Shown piece by piece: positions 22,722-36,608 of a stretch of DNA of 64,000 nucleotides. The stretch's first letter is position 1. Every line of letters begins with the position of its first letter. This stretch comes from Dimorphilus gyrociliatus (taxonomy: Eukaryota > Animalia > Annelida). Where the stretch lies: the NCBI GenBank assembly GCA_904063045.1, contig CAJFCJ010000012.1:1-64000 (forward strand), in the 5' to 3' direction. The translations under genes and the position numbers were made by a program. A model generated the notes under the pieces. The model searched no databases. It worked only from the letters and a program-made list of their open reading frames with translations, and was not told where the DNA came from.

Positions 22722-24305
22722 TTATCTCAAATAAGTTTCCAATCCCATGTAGAAAACAGCTGAATTTGTTTCTTTCTTTAAACGACTGAGTGGTTCACTA
22801 TCCAACATAAAAATATCTAAGAAAATCGGGTCAAATTATTAACTATTGATTGTATTTATTCATAATAAATCTCTTACCGCAATCTAAAGGACCGGTTTGT
22901 ATTTCATAAACTGAAATTGTTCCGCTGAGACTTCCACTGACAAGAAGAAGTGGATTTCCATTGGAACTTAGCTCGGCGGGAATATATCTAATTTTCAAAG
23001 GGGAAAAAAAGTATAAAAATACTCAAGTTGATATGGAAAGAGATTAGAAACTTACTTCATGTCTTGTGTATTTGTATCTCCAACATCCCTGTTGTCAAAC
23101 AGTTGTTGCCAGGTTTTCCTAGTTCCTCCTGGCCTGAAAAGTCCTTCAAATTTTGGTACCAAAGCTTTTCCATTTTCAACTGAATAAACAATGACTGTAG
23201 ATACTCTTTGATTACCAACAAAAAAGTAAGTTTTGTTTCCGATTTGAGCCGTTTCTACAACTTCCACTTCGGGACCCATATCGTCAGATCTAACATCAAA
23301 ATCATCTTCAGGAGCATGAGTTCTATCACCTACATGATTATTGAAGACTTCTGGTAAAATTTTAGCATGATAATTTTCAAAATCCGATCCAGAATCATAA
23401 ATTTTTTCCATTTCATTTTCTGGATCCCAAATTGTAAACGAACGTCCTCCATAAGCATAAAGATTCTCATATAATCCAGTTTTTGGATTTTTTCCATCAA
23501 TTAAACTCAGATATAGACGCCCCAATTTTTTATCATCGCTCAAGGCTTCTCTCATATTCTCGGGTACACTCTCATCTAACATGTTACCGTCTACGAAAAC
23601 TTTACCTCTCGCCATTTCTGCCCAGGTAAGACCTTCGTGCTTAAGTTTATAGGATTTAAGATCGCCCTCGTTTGCTGTAACTAAATAAGGCTTTCCGTTA
23701 TGCTTAAAAAGGCGGATGCCATCCGGTTGATAAAGCCCTCTTATTGGCCACTTCTGGATATTAATTCGACCGTCTTTATCGCTAGCGTCAAAACCTGATT
23801 GGCTCCAATCTTTGTAACCTAATGGAATGATATCTAAAAATTCAGCATTTGATACATCCAATTTGGCTATCGCATTATTTTCTTGCAGCACAACGTAGGC
23901 TATAGACTCATCTTCAGAAAGGACTATATATTCAGGTTCGATGTCATGGGAGAAGGTTAACTGCTCACCCGATCGCTCTCCTTTATAGATCCACCTAACA
24001 CCTTTTGCTAAAAATTCGCTGGCCCTAATATAAAAAAGATAAGGGTTTAGAAAAATTAACATTCAATTTTAGAGATTAAATTCACGTAAAAGATTGAACA
24101 TGTAAAGTTATACATAGCAAAATATGTCATGTACTTGTTCATATTTATATACCAGTATATATATATGCATATCTAAATATACTATTATGATAATTATAAT
24201 AGCATATAGCCATACTGATATATCACAGCAGTAAAGTTACAAATATGAAAAGTAACATTAATAATTTAATATGCATATAGAGTTTCTATAAAGATAATAT
24301 AAATG

Positions 24306-24341
<36 letters not shown>

Positions 24342-25637
24342 TATGTTCATATGTTAGATATAAAATATTTTATATAAATGATAATTAATAATGATAATAT
24401 TATGAAATAAATATACGGTAATAAATAAAGATAAATCAGATAAAAAAGTTTTTTTAGTGCGGTCTGAACCTTTTTTAGCGGTCTAATTTTTGTTTGTATG
24501 TTTCTTTTTTTTGTTTGTTTGTTTGTTTTACTTGAATCTTACCAGATTTTTCTATTCCTTTCGTAAATCGATATTTTATAAGTATGCGAATTAGCTCCTC
24601 CATTTATCCAACTTTATCCTTTGACCGCCTTTTACAGTACGTATATCTCACTGTGAACACTGCGATTTAGAGCATCCTATTCTTACGCTTACCAGGTTGA
24701 TTGAGCGTTCATTAATTTTTTTGTCTTAGTAGTATAGTCTTAGAAATTTGCCTACCTGTCATTAAACTTATGGAAAGTAGCGGTTCGAACCGAATATTCC
24801 AAAAGACTTTCGTTTTTGAAATTGATTACGGTAACTGAACCCTCTGGGTCATGGAATTTTCCGTTCTCATCAAGACCAGCTTCACCTTCATTAGCAACGA
24901 GTAAAGTTTTGCAATCTTTTGTGAATACTATCGAACTTGCAGGGCAATTTCCAACTGTAAATAAAGTAATTGATGAGTGATTGAATAGGCGATAATGAGA
25001 AATGATTAAGTAACTGATAACAAAGAACGATTAAGCAAGTGATAATGATAAAGAAGGAGTTTATCTACTCCTGATCAAGGTTATCATACACCTTCTTTAT
25101 CTTATCGACTTGAATTTTCTTTTAATCTGATAATAATCAAGTTTGATTCATTCTTACATTACTGACTATGTGGTGTAGGTTACTTTCTAACCGACACTTT
25201 TTGATCATAAGGAGTTAAATTTACTTACTTGGGATTTCATGGATTTTTTCCATTGATTTGCTACTGTCTTGGTAAACTTTAAAGATGACCGCTTTGCCAG
25301 GTAAGACGCTAATGTCATTCCTGACACTCAAAGCAATATAATTGCCACAAATATCAAGGTCATTTGGCTCTCCGTCAACATGTTCACTGTGAATTAACTC
25401 AGCATCATTGACAGATGAAAGATCAACAACGTGTAAAAGACCAGCACCACCAATAGCATAGGCTTTCCTAGTACCATAGTGGTAGCCAATTTGTTCGGCA
25501 GCAGCCGAAAAGAGATCGAACTGCGGCGATCCACTTTGATCAAATTCGTATGGAAGATAAATTGTTTTTAAAGGCTTCAGGTTGAATTCACCCAAAGCGA
25601 AGCCAAAAATGAGGGAAAGAACAATGAGTTTTGCCAT
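22722..25637 (-). CDS. MSP130 (mesenchyme-specific cell surface glycoprotein) / choice-of-anchor-I family secreted protein, about 5 exons
   Basis: Signal peptide MAKLIVLSLIFGFALG; exon 2 VGNCPASSIVFTKDCKTLLVANEGE...DPEGSV; exon 3 IEPEY, VLQENNAIA, DASDKDG, GLYQPDG, LVTANEGD, YGGRSFTIW, DVRSDDMGPEVE; last exons LLLVSGSLSGTISVYEI and ...ETYLR*. Confidence 0.88.
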
Positions 25638-26142
25638 CTGTAAGAAAGAGAAGAGATTTCTATAAGGAACAGTCGTTTTTTTGTTTTTATGCTGTACATA
25701 TTTTATATAAATATATATGTTTTTCAATTTTGTTTATTGAAAAGACTAGCGAAAAAATGAAAGAGCTGAAAAACATTAAAATGTTGAAGAAAAGAACAAA
25801 ATGTTCTCGATCTTTGAAAAAATAAAATTCGATATGAACGCTTATGTAATTAACAATTCTTATTTTTTATTGGCATATTTCATTTCCATTTATATCTTTC
25901 ATTATACTTACGATTGAAACCAATCGAATCTGTTTTTCAAATCTTGAATAGAACAAAGAGTTTTAGCGACTTTAGCAACTTTGGAAATCATGCGATGAAC
26001 GCAAGAATGACTGAAAAAATTTACAAGGTCTTTGGAAATTCCTTGTTTTACTTGAAGTTTTGAAAAAAGAGAAAAATTTTTTTAGCTGCTTAAATTACAA
26101 CTGTTCAAGCTTGCGACAGAAACTAACTTGAGCCACAAGCTT

Positions 26143-26152: not shown

Positions 26153-28056
26153 GTAAATTGTTGATAAACAACCTTGACCCTACTGATATGAGGAATTGCG
26201 TGTTCAGTTCGAAAGGTTATTTTTTGCTAAATATTCCTATTTACGTGACGTTCACAGCTGATAAATAATGTATATCTTATAAAAGTAAAGCTAAAAAAAC
26301 CTGATACCAAGTTTAATCAGTCATACACGAGGACGATACACAAGATTTAACTAAGTATCTTAGCCTTTTAAAGATAATCTATGTCTCTGACCAAAAGAAA
26401 AAAATTACTTATTATGTTTAGTCATTTGTAGGTATTAAATGACAAACACAATAAAAAACATAACTTATTATAAAACATGCTAATTGTACACGAATCATTG
26501 GCTTTATAAGGTTTCTTATGAAAGATGTATTTGTATTTTCTAAAAATACGTCTACATGATTTTCTTTTTTTTGTTTTTAACAAGTTTTCGTATCCATATT
26601 AAGAGGGATAAGCCTGGTTTTAATCTACTATAGATATTTCATAGTTCACTATTTTTAGACACGTGTTTATTATTTTATGACAAATAGCTTAGAGTAAAGT
26701 TTGAAATAGTGTAAAAACAAGAAATACATTAACGATTGAAAGACTGCAAAGAAAAATAATAACTTTTCAGCTCTTTCTCTGTTTTACGTTCTGTTCTTTC
26801 TTATTTCAGTGATTTAAGCTATATAAGAGAAAGAAGGACGTATATACAATGGGGCATGATAATATTCTCTCATTATTACTCTTTTTAAAGTTGTTTTTGT
26901 CGTGTTTTATCGTAATTCTCATTTCTTAATAGCGCTATTTACTATCAATAATGAATAATATTTGTATTATATTTTTGTATTATAATTAATTTGGGTAATA
27001 AGAAATAAACAATGATTTATTCAAAACAGTATCATACTGATAAAGGAAGTATCGTACTTTGAGAAATAACAAAAACAGCTTTACTTGACAACGCTTTCTT
27101 GTTTTCATCTAATTGTAAAAAGAAAACTCAGAACCAAAGTACTTTGTACTTGTTATTTTTCTCTCTTTTCCTTTCCCACAACGTCTTTTTTTAAAAGTAA
27201 TTAACTCTCTTCGTATAAATAATATGCCTTTCGTCATTTACATAATACAACATGAAATCCAATCAAAAGCCTTTTTCAATCAATCCACTTAAAATTAAGT
27301 GAAAGTTGTACTCAATGGAAGAAAAAATGTCTAATTATAATAAAAATAGTAATAATAGTTTGGCTCTAAACTTAATAAATTAATGTTTTAGGTATAATTA
27401 GTAACTTTTGACAAATTAGAATTAAAACTCTCTTTTGATTTTAAAAAAGGCTTTCTCCTTGATTGAAAAGTTCAGTAAGATTTTAATGTTTCATTTATAT
27501 TTAAACAAGATAGTGACAAAAACAAAAATAAATAGATTAGTAGTTGAATCTTCGAGAAGATAACGAATAGGTTTTATACTTTATTGCTAAAAATAAACTG
27601 TCGTTGATGATCAGAGAAAAATAGTTAAAAAAATGATAAACAAAGAAAAGGACATTTATATGTCTAAATGTAATAAGTTGATATATTTTCCAATCGTGAT
27701 AAACCAAAATTTCGTGTCAATTTCATTTTTAATAAAGTAAAGCATCTCTAGTCCGTTTTATTTTCGATAGAATTGCAAAGTTTTCCTTTCAGATACTCTC
27801 GAAGAGACGCCTACATATCCAGATGATTGTTGCAGAATTTATCACGACAAACGTGAGTACATGACCGCATATAATGAAATATTTTAGCATTAACTAAAAC
27901 GGTAGTAATTTTCTTCAGCGCACTTAGTTGTTTTGTCGTTGACAGTGAAAGACTAATTCAAGAAAATTTCTCCAATATTTTATATTGAGCGCACTTTCTG
28001 ACAAATAGGAAAGTAGGCGAAAAGATTTAACTTTTTTCTTCTACGTCTTGAACCAA

Positions 28057-31000
28057 ATGAAATTTTACTCGACAAGAATCTGCACTATCTTTATATTTAT
28101 TCGCCTTGCTGTAACATCTAAAAAGCCATATCTCTATCGTTGCAACAATTCGGAATATACAAGACAATTTTATGTCTGCGATGGAATAGATGACTGCTCA
28201 GATAAAAGCGATGAAGCTAACTGCCGTAAGAAATTTTTAATATTAATAATTTCTATAATAACTTGTGTTTTCAAAATTTTCTTCATCATAGCTAATGATT
28301 GTTCCAATCATAATAAATACTTTAAATGTTCTGAATCGTGCATTTCCAATCTTTTATTCTGCGATAAAACCCGAGACTGTAATACATGGAACGAAGAAAT
28401 ATGTTAGTTTTTTTCTTTTTTTAATTAACCTATTTAGGTTAGAATAACATTTTTTTTTCAGGTTGTAATGGAAGCGATTCTACCTGCAAGAAAAATATGA
28501 ATAAAAGTATGTAATTTTATTCCTACTTCATATTTACTACATATCGAAAGATTTACGCTTATTATATATATAACTGTATATACATTTATATTGTATTTAT
28601 AAATATATAACTAAGAATATCCCATAGATCCAATCCGCTTAATTAACGTATCGTCTAAAAGAGGTAAGTGTTCCTTCAAATTATATTATTTGAAAAGAAA
28701 CAAAAGAAATCTTTGTCAAAAAATAAATAAAATTCTTTTTTCTTTATCTATAGATCAGGAATGCAAGAATAAGTACAGATGCACTAGAGGCCCCAAATGT
28801 ATAAGCTTGCGCGAAGTCTGCGACGGAGTGAATGACTGCGAAAAATTTCATGACGATGAAAAAAATTGTAAATTATCTTGTCCAAAAGGTTGCCGATGCG
28901 ATATGGGCTTTCATGATTGTTCAAATATAGGCATTGAGAGAATTCCATTGTATAAAAATGATTACGAAGAACCAAGGACATTAGATATATCTAGAAATAT
29001 CCTCATAACCGTAAAAACAAAATGGTTCTTGGTAAATGAGAATCCTGTTGTAACTAATAACCACCTTTGGCATATTATGAATTTAAATTTCTCAAGAAAT
29101 AGTATTTACCAGATAGAGAGAAAGGTATTTGATATTCTTCGCGTATTGAGATATTTGGATTTATCTCATAACCCACTTAGTAAGCTACTTGGAAGTGATC
29201 TTAGTAAACTTCAAAATCTTCAGTATCTAGATCTTTCATTTACCAACATAAAGACTCTTAATCTGCACTTTTTGACATTACTACCAACTTTGAACACTCT
29301 TAAATTCTCAGGGACAAAAGTAACAACTGTTGATTTGAGAGTGTTGAAAGGAAAGCACAATGTAAGGAATATATACTTTCCTCATTATGCTTTCTGTTGT
29401 AAATTAAAACAGTTGAATGGAGTAATCAATCCGATAAATTGCTCTCCAGATGAAACTAAGCTATCGTCGTGCAATAATCTTTTAAAACTACCTCATTTTA
29501 AACGGTTGCTACTGGCGCTTGCAATTATACTATTCATAGTCTCTTTTGGTCATTGGAATTATGTATATAGATGGGAAAAAGATGAAACTCAGAGATTGCT
29601 GATGCTAAACTTTTCATCATCTCTGTTTTTCATCGCAATCTCTAGTGTACTTCAAGTGGCTAACATAAGATTGAATAAACCTGTTATCAATGATGAATTT
29701 TCAATAATTTCCTCTGCTATCTGCAAAGCCAGTAACGTCTTTTTCATACTAGGCTATGTGTCTGGTCTATTAATTAACATAGTTCTATCCATCTATTCGG
29801 TGTCGCTACCTACAGGATTATTTCGAACTCAATTAAACCTGAAGAAAAAATATAAAATAGCTCTCACTTTTATTTGGCTGATATCTCTAGCATATTTCAT
29901 TTCTAGTTTGACAAATCAAGGATGTTTTAAAACGTATTTTGCCGAAATTGATTCACTGTGTTCACCGCTGAATATCTTAATGAATTCAAGAAATAATGCA
30001 TACATATTCAGTTTAACATTGATACCTCTAGAGAGTATCCTTTTCTCTTTAATATCCCTTTCGTTCTCAGTCTTGGCATTAGGTTGGAGGTTCTACAATA
30101 TTCGAAAAGCAAAACAGTCGTTAAGAGTTAAAGCAAAAAAATTTAAAGATTCTGAAGATGTCTACAACTTATGGACTGATGCTGTATTTGATGCAAAATC
30201 TGATGATGTCGAACTTGTTTCCTCTTTTGTGTCTGTCAGCACATTATATTCAGTTGTTATGATAATATTCGGAATTTGTGGTATTAAATAATCTTTAAAA
30301 ATCTATTTTTTTTAAATAAAATACTTTCTTTTTATACTCTGTAAGCTGCTAAAGTGGCTGCTGACGGTCAGGATTCAGAACTCTACCCCTGGATAACCCA
30401 AATTCTACTGCCCATAGCCGCTGGTCTATCGTCAATTGTCTATATTTCAGTTGATCAAATTGAAATGAGGTTGGAGTATTTTTTAAAAATAATTTATTAA
30501 TTATAAAACTGTTCATCAAACAGGATAGCACTAAAGGACGTTTTTACGAGTAAATAGCTTAATTTATTCAGCATTTTTATCAGATCAGATTCATTTCCTA
30601 TTTCTTTTCAGAAAGAACCTTTAGCGTATTCAGACGAGCAGGTGGCGTAAGCGTACGAATAAGACGACAGTACGTAACTTTACCAGAGTTTGTTAAGAAA
30701 AAATCAGAATTGACTGTTCGCGAGGCTCTCTTCATAGCAAGAAATACTATTTGGATAATAAGGCATATGCATAAGCAAAGTCAAGTATGTGACAAAATAG
30801 GACCTGAATATTTAATGGTTATAACTGATCATCAGGTAGTTTAGTATAGAGATATTTCCCATTCTCAATAAAGATTCAAATACATACATTAATACATACA
30901 GTATACATATATATAAATATATATAAATTTATATGCGTTCATGTTTCCATTTATTAGGAAGAAGTCAAAGATACTGACCTGACGTGTGGAGTAGAATATC

Positions 31001-31605
31001 CAAAAATGGACGTTCACGATTGGAGAAAGAAAAGAGATATAGGTGGTTATGGAAAGATGATAACTCACTTGATTGAACAAGGAAACTTTGTAACGGCAAT
31101 GAAAACACCAAGGATTGGAAAATTTTCTACAGCTGTACAAGCTAAAAGTTTAGTTACGAGAATAAGCCGTAAGCTTTCTCGAAGGAAGATAGCCTCTCCA
31201 GAAAAAAAACAAAGAAGAAATCAAAGAACAAGAAGAACAGTAAGACGGAAATCAAATGAAGAAAAAGCGACTATTGAAGTGAAATTAAATAATCAACAAA
31301 CATCTAAAGAATTAGTTGTTAAAGATAAAACAAAAAGGAAGAGAAAGACAAATGTATCAAATCCATCAATACAAAATGAGAAAAATAATATAGCAATTAT
31401 TAATTTGGATGAACATCAGGAAGATCAACAGCAACAAAACACAAAAAGTAAAACAAGCTATGCCGATGAAGTATTAGATAATAAATTAAAAACACTTTCT
31501 GCAGATAAATTAAAACAGGAATCTTATCAAACAAACAAACCGCAAGCTACTTTTTTGCCGAGTAAAATACCAGATATTTTAGAAAATACGATCGAAATTA
31601 TGTAA
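28057..31605 (+). CDS. LDLa(x3)-LRR-7TM receptor (GRL101/RXFP-type LGR), paralog A, with an unusual cytoplasmic extension
   Basis: Signal peptide; LDLa CDGIDDCSDKSDEANC, CDKTRDC, CDGVNDC; LRRNT and LRRs; hinge HYAFCC..INCSP..LSSCNNLL; TM1-6 in the large exon to 30280; TM7 exon 30346-30469; exons 30524-30549, 30612-30835, 30958-31605 splice in frame at GT-AG sites. Confidence 0.9.
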
Positions 31606-32946
31606 CTACACTTGTTGTCAAAGTACTTTTAAAAGACGTACAAAGGTTGTTTGTTGTACGAATTCTTTGATTATTATTTTTTTATATACATATTATTCTT
31701 ATGTTGGTCAAATATGCATTAAATTTTTTACCTAAAGATAGTAGTAGTAATGCTTAATATATCTGATAGATGGTGCCGTTTGTTAATGAATAAGGAAAGT
31801 GAATTTTCTTTCAAAGTTTCAACCTCGATAGATTAGCGGAAACTCTTTCCAATTAAATTCTTTATACAAAGCATTTCCTAATTATAATATATATAATAAT
31901 ATATATTTATATAAATTTAATTCATTTATCTATATTTACTAATATACAGTATACATGTGTGTATGTCTAATAATGAAACTCGTCTTCCTCTCTTGCTTAT
32001 TTTCAATCTCGGATTAGATTTTTATTTCTGATATGAATAGAATTCATTATTTTAAATAAAAGGTAGAGTTTTTACAAAATCAAAGATTATTATAATCTTT
32101 TATAATATATAATAATTTGTCTTTTCATGTATAAAAGAACATGCTCCGCTTGAGCTAAAGGTGAGTATACAGAATATGTAATTTCTTTATTTAACCTTAC
32201 TCTCTATAAATGTATATAAAATAGAACGTATAAAAATTTATTACCATGAAATAATGATAAAAAAAAGTCCATAAAGAAGCTAATTTTTACAAGCAATGTT
32301 ATAGTTACATAAAAAAAGATAATGAGCTTTTCCTCTTCTTTTAATTTCCTTAAGAATATTGTCCTCCTCGAAGAGAAAATTGAAAATGAAATATGCTTGG
32401 TCTATAATTATAATGTTAACATTTATAAAGAAAAAAGGAAAGGTTCATGTAAAAAAAAAAAGATAGAATAAAAAGCATATACTCAGCTATATTCAATGAC
32501 GGAGAAAATGCAATAATACAAAGTCATGTCATATTTTCGAGTTACTTGTCAGTTTTAAATTCAGTAAATTTTAATATTCTTCTAAACGAAAAAAAGGATA
32601 CTTTATAATACAAATTTTAATATATGCAAATTTATTCAATGTTTATCAATTATCAGAAATAAACGTTTTAATTAGAATATATATATATATATATATACAC
32701 AAAATGTAACATTAAATAATGTAATTGAATCCTCAAACGTAGTTTTTTTTAATTAGGCTTCTCTAGAACTTACTACTAGATCAGCAATGAGTCTTGAATA
32801 AAATTAATCACGACTTACGTGACTTGTTGAAAAACCATATTTAAATTTTCTCATTTTTTTTTGCTTTCTATTAACCAATCGCTTACCACTGCCTACGAAA
32901 CATAAATTTACAAAGAACTTTTCTAACCATCATTCGAGTCCGAAGA

Positions 32947-35900
32947 ATGAACAAGAAAGTTCTACCCTTAACTTTTTGTTTAACAATTCTTTATCATGTA
33001 CAGTTTATAAAAGCAAAGACAGTTTTTAAATGTAAAACTTCATCAGAATATATACGAAATTTTTTCGTCTGTGATGGATATAAAGACTGCAAAGATAATA
33101 GCGATGAAGAAAACTGTGGTAAGTTTTATGATAGAAAGGTTTTTTTCAATTTGACTCCCATTTTTAACTGTTTCCATCTAAAGATGGCCAATGCGACGAT
33201 ACATTGAGAAACTTTAAATGTGGAAAAAACTTGTGTATATCAAATATACTTGCTTGTGACAATATTAGAAATTGTCAAGGATCTGCCGATGAAAAATGTA
33301 AGCTTATTAGCAGTTCTATTTAAAAAATATGTATAATAAATTATATAAATTCATATTTCAGGTTGTGTTAAAAATGATGCAAAATGTATAAAGATTTATC
33401 ACTATGGTGGTAAGATAAAATTTATCTCTTCTTCTCTTTTCGTAGTCTATTATAAGATACTCTATTAGTTGAACAAAGCGTATGACTTATTCCAATCCCA
33501 AATACAGTATACTGATTAATACAACTAGAAATAATTAATAAAACGTCATAGAGGTTGATAAAATATATTGAAATTAGATCATCTTTTAGGTTTTATAGAA
33601 AAGCAAACGCGATATCGTCCTGTTCGACCGGACAATGACCGTACGTATAAATATGATATACAGTATATATGTACTGTATATTCAGTATATACGGCATTTA
33701 TATACGCATTTTTGCATATTCCAGTCTTATTATATTTCATATATTTACTTTATTTTCAAATAGCTAACACATGTAGAGGTAGATATAGATGTCTCGGTAA
33801 TGGAAAATGCATTAACGTTAGAGAAGTTTGCGATAATAACCACAATTGCGGCGAATTAGATGATGACGAAATGCATTGTGAGTTAGAGTGTCCAAGCTTA
33901 TGTAATTGCAATATGGCTTTCCATAATTGTTCAAATCTAAATCTCAAAAGAATACCAGCTTACTCTGAGAAGCATGAAGAAGTAAAAGCTCTTGATATGT
34001 CTTTCAATGCACTAGAAACTGTTGAAAGTGAATGGTTTAAATCCAATATTACAAATAAAATGGGAAAATCAAAACAATCAAGATTGGTCTATATACTGCA
34101 CTTGAATCTATCTCATAATAAAATTAAGAGATTACATGCGAACAGTCTAGAAATCCTACTGAATTTAAAGACTTTGGACTTGTCGCACAATCCGTTGGAA
34201 AGTATTGAAGACAGTCACATTTATAGCGTGGCAAACTTGAACTTTTTAGACTTGTCATATACAAATATAAGATCGATTGATTTTTCAACTAGCCAAAAAT
34301 TTAACGAATTAGTTACTTTAAAGCTGTCTAACACTAAGATTACAACGCTAAGCGTTGATCACTTTGTGGATTTTGAATCTCTTAGAGACATTGAACTACC
34401 TCACTATGCTTTTTGCTGTAAGCTAAAAGAGTACAAGAATACTGATCAGATAAACTGTTCACCAATGGAAACTGAATTATCAACTTGTAGTAATGCGTTA
34501 AAACTTACATCACTGAGGAAATCACTTATAGTTGTATCAGTATTCTCATTATTAGCTATTATAGGAGCCATATCTTATTCTTTCAAAATTGAGAGTGATG
34601 AAATACAAAAGTTGATAATGGTACATTTTTTTGTATCTTTGCTGTTAATCTCATTTTCTTACATTATCCAAGATATCAGCATTGCAGTAAATAATTCAAG
34701 AATAAATACTAAATTTGAAATTACATCATCTATAATTTGTAAGGCGGCTTCAACATTCTATTTAGTTGGACATGTCTCAAGTCTGCTAAACAGTATACTT
34801 GTCGGTGGTTATTCTTTGGCGGTTCCATTAGGACTTTTGAAAGATTTAAAGTTCGTAAAGAAAACGTTAAGAACTACATATGTCGTTATTTGGTTGTTAG
34901 GAATAGGAATTTTTGGCGCAGTTATTGCTGGAAAAGGAAAATTAGAAAACTATTTTGTTGATATTGACGCTCTCTGTATACCGATTAATTTTCTACTAGA
35001 TAAAAAAAGCGAAATGTTCAATTTTGGCTTAATTTTCGTTCCTAGTTTATCTCTCTTGACTTGTGTAATAAACTTTATTTTAATAATAAGCACCGCTTCT
35101 CTACGATTGAAAAATATCTTGACAATTCGAAAAGGATTGAAAGAAAAAGCTAAAATAATTAAAGATGATGAAAACGTCTATAACCTCTGGAAGGGAGCAG
35201 TATTCGAAATGAAGTCTAACGATATTGAAATAGTTGCTTCATTTACAATAATATGCACAGCTTTCTCATTTATAACTCTAATATACTCTATTTTAGGTGC
35301 GATCTTTGCTTAGAAAAATTCTCTAAAGTTATTAATAAAGTTCATCTTTTATCATAGGCTTTACACTTTTAAAGATTAATGAAATTAACGTGATTTATCC
35401 ATATATACTTCCCATGTTACCTCCCATTGTTACTTTCGTATGTGCTATGACTTACATAATAGTGGATCAAATAGAAATGAGGTATGCATAATTTTACATC
35501 TATTGTGTCTGCTTTAAATTTAATATTCTTGTTCAATTGGTTTTTATTTTAGGATGGCAATGAAAGACATGTTTACTCGTAAGTTTTTTTTATGATTCAT
35601 ATGTTTTTACCAATGATTTTATTTTCAATTTCTTTTCTTAAAGGTAAAACGTTTAGTGTGTTTAGAAGAGCGGGTGGTGCTTCTAAACGAATAAGACGTC
35701 TCTATAAAACTCTACCCGATTTCTTGGAGGAAAAAATGGAATTAAAATCTAAGGAGCTATTATTTATAGCAACCCATACAATGTGGAATATTTGTCATAT
35801 GCATAAACAAGGACAAGTCTGCGACAAGTCGGATTTAAGCTGTCTTATGATTGTTACAGATTTTGAGGTGATACTTTTTAATCATTAAAAAATAATACTT

Positions 35901-36608
35901 ATCATTTCCATAATTGTATCGAAGTATATTCTACACGTGTCCGATTTACGTAAACAATAATCATCTAGGCATAAAGTAATAATACAAATTGAAGTTTTGT
36001 ATATCTTTTACCAGGGAGCAATAAAAGATGTCGATCTCGTCTGCGGATCAGAATATCCTAAGTTAGATATTGCAAAATGGAGAATGCAAAGAGATATCTT
36101 GATCTTTGGCAAAATGATTGATGAAATTCTTTTAAAAGGAAATATTATAACTTCTTTCAATATAAAACCGGCAGAGAAGCTTACTCCTGGAAGACGAGCC
36201 AGAAATTTGGCAAATAGACTTACTAATAAGTTTTCTATAATTAAAAGGGGTCAAAATAAGGAAGGTTCAGATACTCCAAAGCAAGCGAGGGCAAAACTGA
36301 ATCGAAAAGAGGGTAGTATTGAATCTGTAGATAAGAGTGTTCAGCTAGTTGAAAAGAATAACTGTTCTGGAAAAACGGTAAATGACGAAAAGCGAACTAA
36401 TGTAAAGAACGATGAGAAATTATGCGAAAAATCTGACGTGAACATCAAAACTGATGAGAATATAGAAGAACGTATTGAGAAGCAAGAAATAGATAATAGC
36501 GATTTATCGAATAAAGGTGAAAGTGAATCTAAAAATCCCTTAACTCATCAAACGATAACTCTTGACCTACCAGATATTTTGGAAGATATTACTGTTAAGA
36601 AATTCTAG
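32947..36608 (+). CDS. LDLa(x3)-LRR-7TM receptor (GRL101/RXFP-type LGR), paralog B, tandem duplicate of A
   Basis: Same architecture and similar intron positions: CDGYKDCKDNSDEENC, CDNIRNC, CDNNHNC; HYAFCC..INCSP..LSTCSNAL; 26-nt micro-exon 35553-35578; exons 35644-35867 and 36015-36608. Confidence 0.9.

Follow-up and report, generated by a model that had tools for sequence, protein, structure and literature searches.

The window analyzed here, a 64,000-nucleotide stretch of the genome of the annelid Dimorphilus gyrociliatus (contig CAJFCJ010000012.1, positions 1 to 64,000), contains two neighboring genes, paralog A and paralog B, a tandem-duplicated pair that encodes strongly diverged G protein-coupled receptors (GPCRs) of the LGR type (relaxin-receptor-like). 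Behind the seventh transmembrane helix (TM7), each protein carries a tail that resembles the αD-to-αF core of a protein kinase domain, ~95 to 115 residues long and smaller than a C-lobe. We consider it likely that this tail descends from a kinase core and now serves as a non-catalytic docking module of these receptors. A preliminary description of the window, made from the letters alone, had proposed that paralog A carries a degenerate kinase C-lobe after TM7. The profile and the predicted fold of the tail are indeed kinase-like, but the tail does not amount to a whole C-lobe: just αD to αF are present, and the activation segment is cut short. The tail is found on paralog A as described, yet it is not special to A, as it also occurs in paralog B and in a second species.

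Transcript evidence for paralog A came from the single public run that holds this stretch (X1), which provides assembled contigs, not reads; these were placed on window positions 27900-31800. The contigs are spliced, and the run is therefore RNA. They contain four 5′ joints (28225/28292, 28402/28462, 28506/28628, and 28663/28754) and four 3′ joints (30280/30346, 30469/30524, 30549/30612, and 30835/30958), all of them GT..AG, and the joined exons form one open frame of 969 amino acids (aa). A single 1480-nt contig spans from position 29866, in the region of TM5 and TM6, across all four 3′ joints to 31648, and thereby extends beyond the stop codon at 31603-31605. The receptor and the tail of paralog A are encoded by one mRNA and one open reading frame (ORF). 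The two tail exons that had been proposed (30612-30835 and 30958 onward) are real and are spliced in frame to the seven-transmembrane (7TM) exons in this contig, and the proposed peptide, from RIRRQYV to LIEQG, is present letter for letter in the 969-aa protein. Transcripts pass position 30291, and 30612-31605 is not a separate gene. While the two tail exons and their junctions had been placed correctly, a 26-nt micro-exon had been overlooked. This exon, which follows the TM7 exon and precedes the tail, is entered in phase 2 and left in phase 1, and is needed because the frame of paralog A would not close without it. The intron at 30835/30958, which interrupts the tail between β7 and β8, is of phase 0. 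It is kept in paralog B (35553-35578) and in the orthologs L001 and L003, and thus in four genes of two species. The features of the two genes are as follows.

28057..31605 (+): paralog A gene (coding sequence, 969 aa), a spliced ORF built from the joints of the X1 RNA contigs
28057-28225, 28292-28402, 28462-28506, 28628-28663, 28754-30280 (+): paralog A exons 1-5, from RNA contigs
30346-30469, 30524-30549, 30612-30835, 30958-31605 (+): paralog A exons 6-9, from RNA contigs
28754..30280 (+): large exon of A, with the third LDLa module, leucine-rich repeat (LRR) ectodomain, Cys-rich hinge, and TM1-TM6, from Pfam and colinearity with LGRs
30346..30469 (+): TM7 exon of A, with SSIVY (30426-30452) where NPxxY is expected, from joints and alignment
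30524..30549 (+): 26-nt micro-exon of A (helix 8 or linker), from joints 30469/30524 and 30549/30612
30612..30835 (+): tail exon 1 of A, with a basic stretch, αD, αE, HMH..CDKIGPEY (30764-30820), and β7 as predicted from the MSK1 register, hhalign, and AlphaFold (AF2)
30958..31080 (+): start of the last exon of A, with β8, DL[TV] on DFG, CGVEYPK (30967-31005), and αF RDIGGYG (31027-31062) as predicted from hhalign and AlphaFold (AF2)
31081..31566 (+): low-confidence helix of A followed by a poorly conserved K/R/E/Q-rich linker (predicted local distance difference test [pLDDT] score 42-54; 26-42% identity)
31567..31602 (+): C-terminal motif IPDILENTIE of A, kept in A, B, L001, and L003
32947..36608 (+): gene of paralog B (public protein DgyrCDS8618, P0001, 961 aa), organized like A
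35644-35867, 36015-36608 (+): tail exons of paralog B

The exons of paralog B are 100% identical to the public protein DgyrCDS8618 (P0001, 961 aa), which is annotated with the same tail. Orthologs of both genes were present in a second, related species (L003 for A and L001 for B; Logan contigs, SRR23372229), and the exon structure, including the 26-nt micro-exon, is common to the four genes. All four end in a motif, (I/L)PDILE(N/D)(T/I), that follows a weakly conserved basic linker (LPDILEDIT in B, 36567-36605). No database protein of 528-1682 aa with the tail of A was found, though that of B was, and A may have no public model, or one without the tail.

Elsewhere in paralog A, two further micro-exons (28462-28506 and 28628-28663) occur in the N-terminal part. 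A 116-nt RNA contig (depth 10.8) omits 58 nt at 29807-29866 in the TM-coding exon, with CT..AC ends. These ends correspond to GT..AG on the minus strand, and the skip could stem from a spliced transcript of the antisense strand or from an artefact of assembly.

The kinase likeness of the tail was evaluated using a profile of the four tails (A, B, and the two orthologs; profile A1) built from exon pieces. Among 177,635 sequences of the PDB, the C-terminal kinase domain of MSK1 was the only match to this profile at E ≤ 10 (E = 0.5). The same domain was matched by tail exon 1 of A alone (E = 0.26) and by a profile of the A-type tails (E = 0.066), and the alignment always started at αD, passed αE (where HMH faces HMH) and the HRDLKPEN loop, and reached β7. 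For profile-profile comparison, we used 54 Pkinase domains from viral contigs that had been fetched with a fragment of MSK1 as the probe, a sample of which was verified as PF00069 (E = 1e-45 to 1e-76). Aligned with hhalign to these domains, the four spliced tails gave a score of 36.5 (P = 1.6e-5, probability 79%) over tail residues 21-115 (93 columns), from αD to αF, where the alignment ends. In this register, VKDxDL covers the strand and DFG, CGxEYP lies over GT..Y.APE, and RDIxxYG matches DIWSxG. This profile replaced an earlier five-sequence kinase profile, with which hhalign had given P values of 0.004-0.008.

Controls for the hhalign comparison scored 13.1 ± 3.0 in 300 column shuffles, none of which reached 36.5, and 16.0 for the reversed tail alignment. 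The A-type tails alone scored 36.0, and the more eroded B-type tails alone scored 22.5 (P = 0.004) in the same register. Using HMMER (--max) with a hidden Markov model (HMM) of the viral kinases, the A tails scored 7.6 and 10.8 bits, values reached by 0 of 500 shuffles, and the B tails scored 2.9 and 2.4 bits, values reached by 6 and 14 of 500 shuffles, respectively. Because no shuffle reached the hhalign score and the PDB profile search returned a kinase only, the likeness of the tail to kinases exceeds chance. The register that had been drawn by eye in the preliminary description is reproduced by both HMMER and hhalign, from αD through αF; in αE, HMH corresponds to YLH, and CDK..PEY corresponds to HRDLKPEN in the catalytic loop.

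The predicted structure of the tail agrees with this register. The AlphaFold model of profile A1 had a pLDDT of 65, with values of 70-80 across residues 20-110, and a predicted template modeling (pTM) score of 0.58. It starts with a hairpin, which is followed by one short and one long helix, then by four short strands and a second long helix; this is the order of β4/5, αD, αE, β6-9, and αF of a kinase, with strands at residues 77-87 and the last helix at 95-115. Similarity to the kinase fold, which the preliminary description had anticipated, was found with Foldseek against the PDB, where the best 50 matches were all protein kinases (E = 0.02-0.17). On re-comparison with VIA, Z scores reached 10.7, and residues 84-284 of CDK1 superposed at 2.6 Å over 95 residues. 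When VIA was run, unbiased and independently of Foldseek, against 48,161 representative chains, essentially all of the best 50 were of kinase-like fold (Z = 9.2 to 7.1). Chance lists from VIA are usually at Z 4-5 by rank 50. The best 50 included the pseudokinases PEAK3, PAN3, MLKL, and STK40, RIO kinases, the KIND domain of Spir-1 (2yle, Z = 7.5), and the C-terminal domain of MSK1 (Z = 7.1, 2.5 Å over 95 residues). Structure matches in AFDB Swiss-Prot, the AFDB clusters, and the ESM Atlas were likewise of the kinase fold. The core fold of the C-lobe (αD, αE, β6-9, and αF) is therefore matched, as judged on a predicted model only.

The match to Spir-1 bears on the source of the tail, which might have been taken from a KIND gene (of the Spir, PTPN13, or very-KIND type) and not from an active kinase. 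KIND is a known non-catalytic derivative of the kinase C-lobe that is used for protein binding (PMC2064798), and a Z score of 7.5 to 2yle would be in line with such an origin. However, kinases and pseudokinases scored equal to or better than KIND, Pfam KIND gave no match at E ≤ 10, the best sequence match was the C-terminal kinase of MSK1, and the tail is approximately half as long as KIND. We regard an origin from KIND as very unlikely.

Among the AFDB clusters, the tail model also fit residues 160-307 of B3SDW0 (E = 0.016), a protein of 326 aa whose annotation includes a GPCR family 1 profile. The protein is presumably from Trichoplax, judging from its accession series, and it may be another protein that combines a 7TM domain with a kinase lobe.

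Several observations weigh against descent from a kinase and a role in docking. Direct searches of the tail did not return a kinase: the Pfam profiles Pkinase, PK_Tyr_Ser-Thr, and KIND had no match at E ≤ 10 in the exon pieces, in P0001, or in P0001:685-830; neither phmmer with the B tail against the PDB nor an ESM Atlas feature search with the B tail found one. Individual significance values were modest (PDB E = 0.07-0.5; Foldseek E = 0.02-0.2), the A1 profile is shallow (four sequences from two species, effective number of sequences 1.6), and the best shuffle in the hhalign control reached 34.2, near the real score of 36.5. The AlphaFold model is of medium confidence and may have drifted to the commonest fold bearing such motifs, and the two models fold tail residues 1-20 differently, one as a hairpin and the other as a helix. 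No donor kinase was identified. Finally, what the data show is the exon structure, one mRNA, the conservation of the tail, and its kinase-like profile and predicted fold; that the tail comes from a kinase, that it docks partners, and that coupling to G proteins has been lost is inferred.

Several of these points would also fit a lineage-specific domain of independent origin, in which the kinase motifs arose by chance and AlphaFold drifted from a shallow alignment. The absence of Pfam matches, the weak single E values, the closeness of the best shuffle, a pLDDT of only 65, and the absence of relatives beyond two closely related species all favor it. Yet three approaches, the HMMER search of the PDB, hhalign, and the structure search made without Foldseek, agree on both family and register. 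Moreover, even the tails of the B type, which are more eroded, can be aligned to kinases in that register (P = 0.004), and the ungapped spacing from αE to DFG fits a kinase. We therefore find independent origin unlikely and retain descent from a kinase core as the better explanation. The tail is a remote relic that lies beyond the reach of standard Pkinase HMMs and is not a recognizable pseudokinase domain.

Some matches of the direct searches were set aside. The aminotransferase and the RNase P protein returned by phmmer for the B tail against the PDB are chance matches. Matches of the ESM Atlas feature search (TGF-beta/activin receptor ectodomains and Ly6 toxins) were dismissed, as their best score, 0.62, is below the meaningful level, and the ESM Atlas structure rows for the B tail were uninformative, the input model having a pLDDT of 0.52.

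We then compared the tail with a complete kinase domain. The tail is predicted to hold the hinge and αD, αE, the backbone of the catalytic loop, β7-β8, a remnant of the P+1/APE region, and αF. No N-lobe precedes it, as had been proposed: ~35 residues separate TM7 from αD, and the glycine loop, the VAIK lysine, and the αC glutamate are missing. A basic stretch ahead of αD is possibly a relic of β4-β5, modeled as a low-confidence hairpin. HRD is replaced by CDK in four of four tails, the catalytic loop reading CDKIGPEY in A and CDKSDLSC in B, and the loop lysine and the Mg-binding asparagine are gone (G..Y in A, D..C in B). The preliminary description was right that HRD and the catalytic asparagine are substituted (the latter by Y or C), but it also held DFG to be substituted, and there the aspartate may remain: D-L-[TV] aligns on DFG, and fewer than 10 residues separate it from EYP, compared with at least 20 in kinases. 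Judging from the alignment, the DFG aspartate and the aspartate and glycine of αF may be kept, and the αF aspartate is conserved in four of four tails. After αF, helices αG-I are absent, and one low-confidence helix is followed by a low-complexity linker.

Because the N-lobe, the ATP-binding lysine and glutamate, the catalytic aspartate and asparagine, and αG-I are all lacking, the tail is predicted to be catalytically dead and unable to phosphorylate. Enzymatic or nucleotide-binding activity, as in an atypical kinase, could be argued from the aspartate at the DFG position and the αF aspartate found in all four tails. Against this, the N-lobe, the glycine loop, the VAIK lysine, and the αC glutamate are lacking, HRD has become CDK, and the asparagine has become Y or C. 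We give such retained activity almost no credence.

Comparison of orthologs between the two species indicated where constraint lies in these proteins. Identity was 88-89% in tail exon 1 and 80-89% across the opening 45 residues of the last exon, compared with 63-69% in the 7TM domain, 47-52% in the LRR region, and 36-42% in the linker that follows the tail. The same ranking was seen between paralogs A and B, which are 49-61% identical in the tail core, 38% in the 7TM domain, and 39% in the LRR region. By sequence identity, the tail is the most constrained part of the protein, and we therefore infer that it would be the intracellular output device of the receptor. This pattern also bears on whether the tail is a decaying, functionless remnant that acts as a spacer separating the 7TM domain from the PDILE motif. 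Loss of the catalytic residues and of half of the kinase domain would fit decay, but a remnant of this kind is not expected to be the most conserved segment among both orthologs and paralogs, far above the adjoining linker. We consider decay extremely unlikely and favor a maintained, non-catalytic module of kinase descent.

Outside these two species, the tail was not detected. When 5.8 billion proteins were searched with the query restricted to this region, P0001 was the only match. With phmmer against 1.84 billion representatives, the only matches were P0001 itself, two ORF fragments from the second species, and a spurious repeat protein. At the sensitivity of these two protein-database searches, the tail is confined to two related species and was not found in other annelid or mollusc LGRs, where the preliminary description had suggested looking for it.

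The receptor part of both proteins is of the LGR type. Pfam identified Ldl_recept_a, LRR_8, and LRR_4 in the large exon of A, and LDLa and LRR domains also in P0001; 7tm_1 had no match at E ≤ 10 in the exon pieces of A or in P0001. The nearest proteins outside the lineage are of the LDLa+LRR+7tm_1 relaxin-receptor/LGR kind (24-27% identity over 66-93% of the query), and in the alignment with LGR homologs, colinearity extends from the hinge cysteines to TM7. In an AlphaFold model of P0001:340-845 (paralog B), seven TM helices were confidently predicted, and the best Foldseek matches to the B 7TM model were FSHR, TSHR, LHCGR, and LGR4, with further class A receptors next. Both proteins combine a signal peptide with LDLa modules, an LRR ectodomain, a Cys-rich hinge, and a 7TM domain that is class-A-like.

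This order of LDLa, LRR, Cys-rich hinge, and 7TM is the same as in type C LGRs, the relaxin-family receptors (RXFP1/2-like). In contrast to these, Pfam 7tm_1 is undetected in A and B, and the class A switches D2.50, DRY, CWxP, and NPxxY are all replaced in the alignment. The DRY position reads SIY in A and GGY in B, and where NPxxY is expected, A has SSIVY and B has AMTYI. A and B additionally have the kinase-like tail and a highly conserved insertion in intracellular loop 3 (30148-30228 in A, 35164-35244 in B). The insertion is rich in D/E, continues as VYNLW..AVF..KS.D.E.V.SF, is predicted to be helical, and is absent from the ordinary LGRs aligned.

Collectively, these features suggest how the receptors could work. 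An LGR would have gained a kinase-derived tail of the CAMK/MSK C-terminal-domain type, probably through the capture of two exons. The tail would then serve as an intracellular output device, offering a non-catalytic docking surface in the manner of a KIND domain or a pseudokinase. A change of state in the ectodomain and 7TM domain might lead the tail to bind another protein, perhaps one that resembles a substrate or a true kinase, and such docking would replace or supplement G-protein coupling. The loop 3 insertion and the PDILE motif may share a docking interface with the tail. Taken to its full extent, this scheme would make A and B the first bilaterian 7TM proteins with a kinase-derived docking output in place of G-protein coupling, in which an LGR captured two CAMK-like exons, subsequently lost its microswitches, and recruits a kinase or substrate together with the loop 3 insertion and PDILE. 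We put forward this extended version as a speculative possibility that is rather doubtful as a whole.

KIND is among the closest known systems. Like KIND, the tail is probably derived from a kinase and lacks the N-lobe and the catalytic residues, and the Spir-1 KIND domain is a fold match. They differ in that KIND (PF16474) comprises ~200 residues and sits in cytosolic proteins, whereas the tail comprises ~100 residues, extends from αD to αF only, has no KIND HMM match, and is located on the C-tail of a 7TM receptor. In sequence, the tail is closer to CAMK-type kinases, as represented by the C-terminal domain of MSK1, than to KIND.

Fusions of 7TM domains with kinases have been described in oomycetes and amoebozoans (PMC6033456, PMC5784254) and in acanthoecid choanoflagellates and sponges, but reportedly in no further lineages of metazoans (PMC12716839). 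They arose repeatedly, and none has been functionally characterized (PMC12716839, PMC6033456). Like GPCR-TKL/K, GPCR-TK, and GPCR-bigrams, A and B place a C-terminal kinase-type module after a 7TM domain in one polypeptide. However, the known fusions have complete kinases that Pfam detects, joined to unrelated 7TM families, whereas A and B have a truncated, apparently dead relic on an LGR. In the literature searched, no LGR bearing a kinase-derived tail was found described, and the novelty on animal LGRs that had been suggested holds within that literature (PMC12716839).

Inactive kinase folds are also known from other receptors that bind ligands extracellularly. The kinase-homology domain of receptor guanylyl cyclases and the pseudokinases ROR, RYK, and PTK7 link a ligand-binding ectodomain to partners. 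By analogy, A and B may be likened to these receptor pseudokinases, having an inactive kinase-fold module behind an extracellular ligand-binding domain. Unlike A and B, receptor pseudokinases are single-pass proteins with a complete bilobal fold.

A and B represent a bilaterian GPCR of the hormone-receptor type with a probable kinase-derived, non-catalytic module, a pairing that has not been described before in bilaterians, and they have lost the motifs required to activate G proteins. If the module is the signaling output, these proteins would be a naturally occurring example of a GPCR scaffold that was rewired for signaling of the pseudokinase type, and the module would be a second, independent invention of a KIND-like domain. 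The finding is of interest to specialists on GPCRs and on pseudokinases, and it is lineage-restricted, with two related species so far. A and B also expose a blind spot in GPCR censuses based on Pfam. The D. gyrociliatus genome paper gathered GPCRs by Pfam 7TM profiles at E < 0.01 (PMC7854359), and these profiles would miss both A and B.

Upstream of paralog A, long minus-strand ORFs at 23052-24062 (-) and 25221-25727 (-) belong to an unrelated gene.

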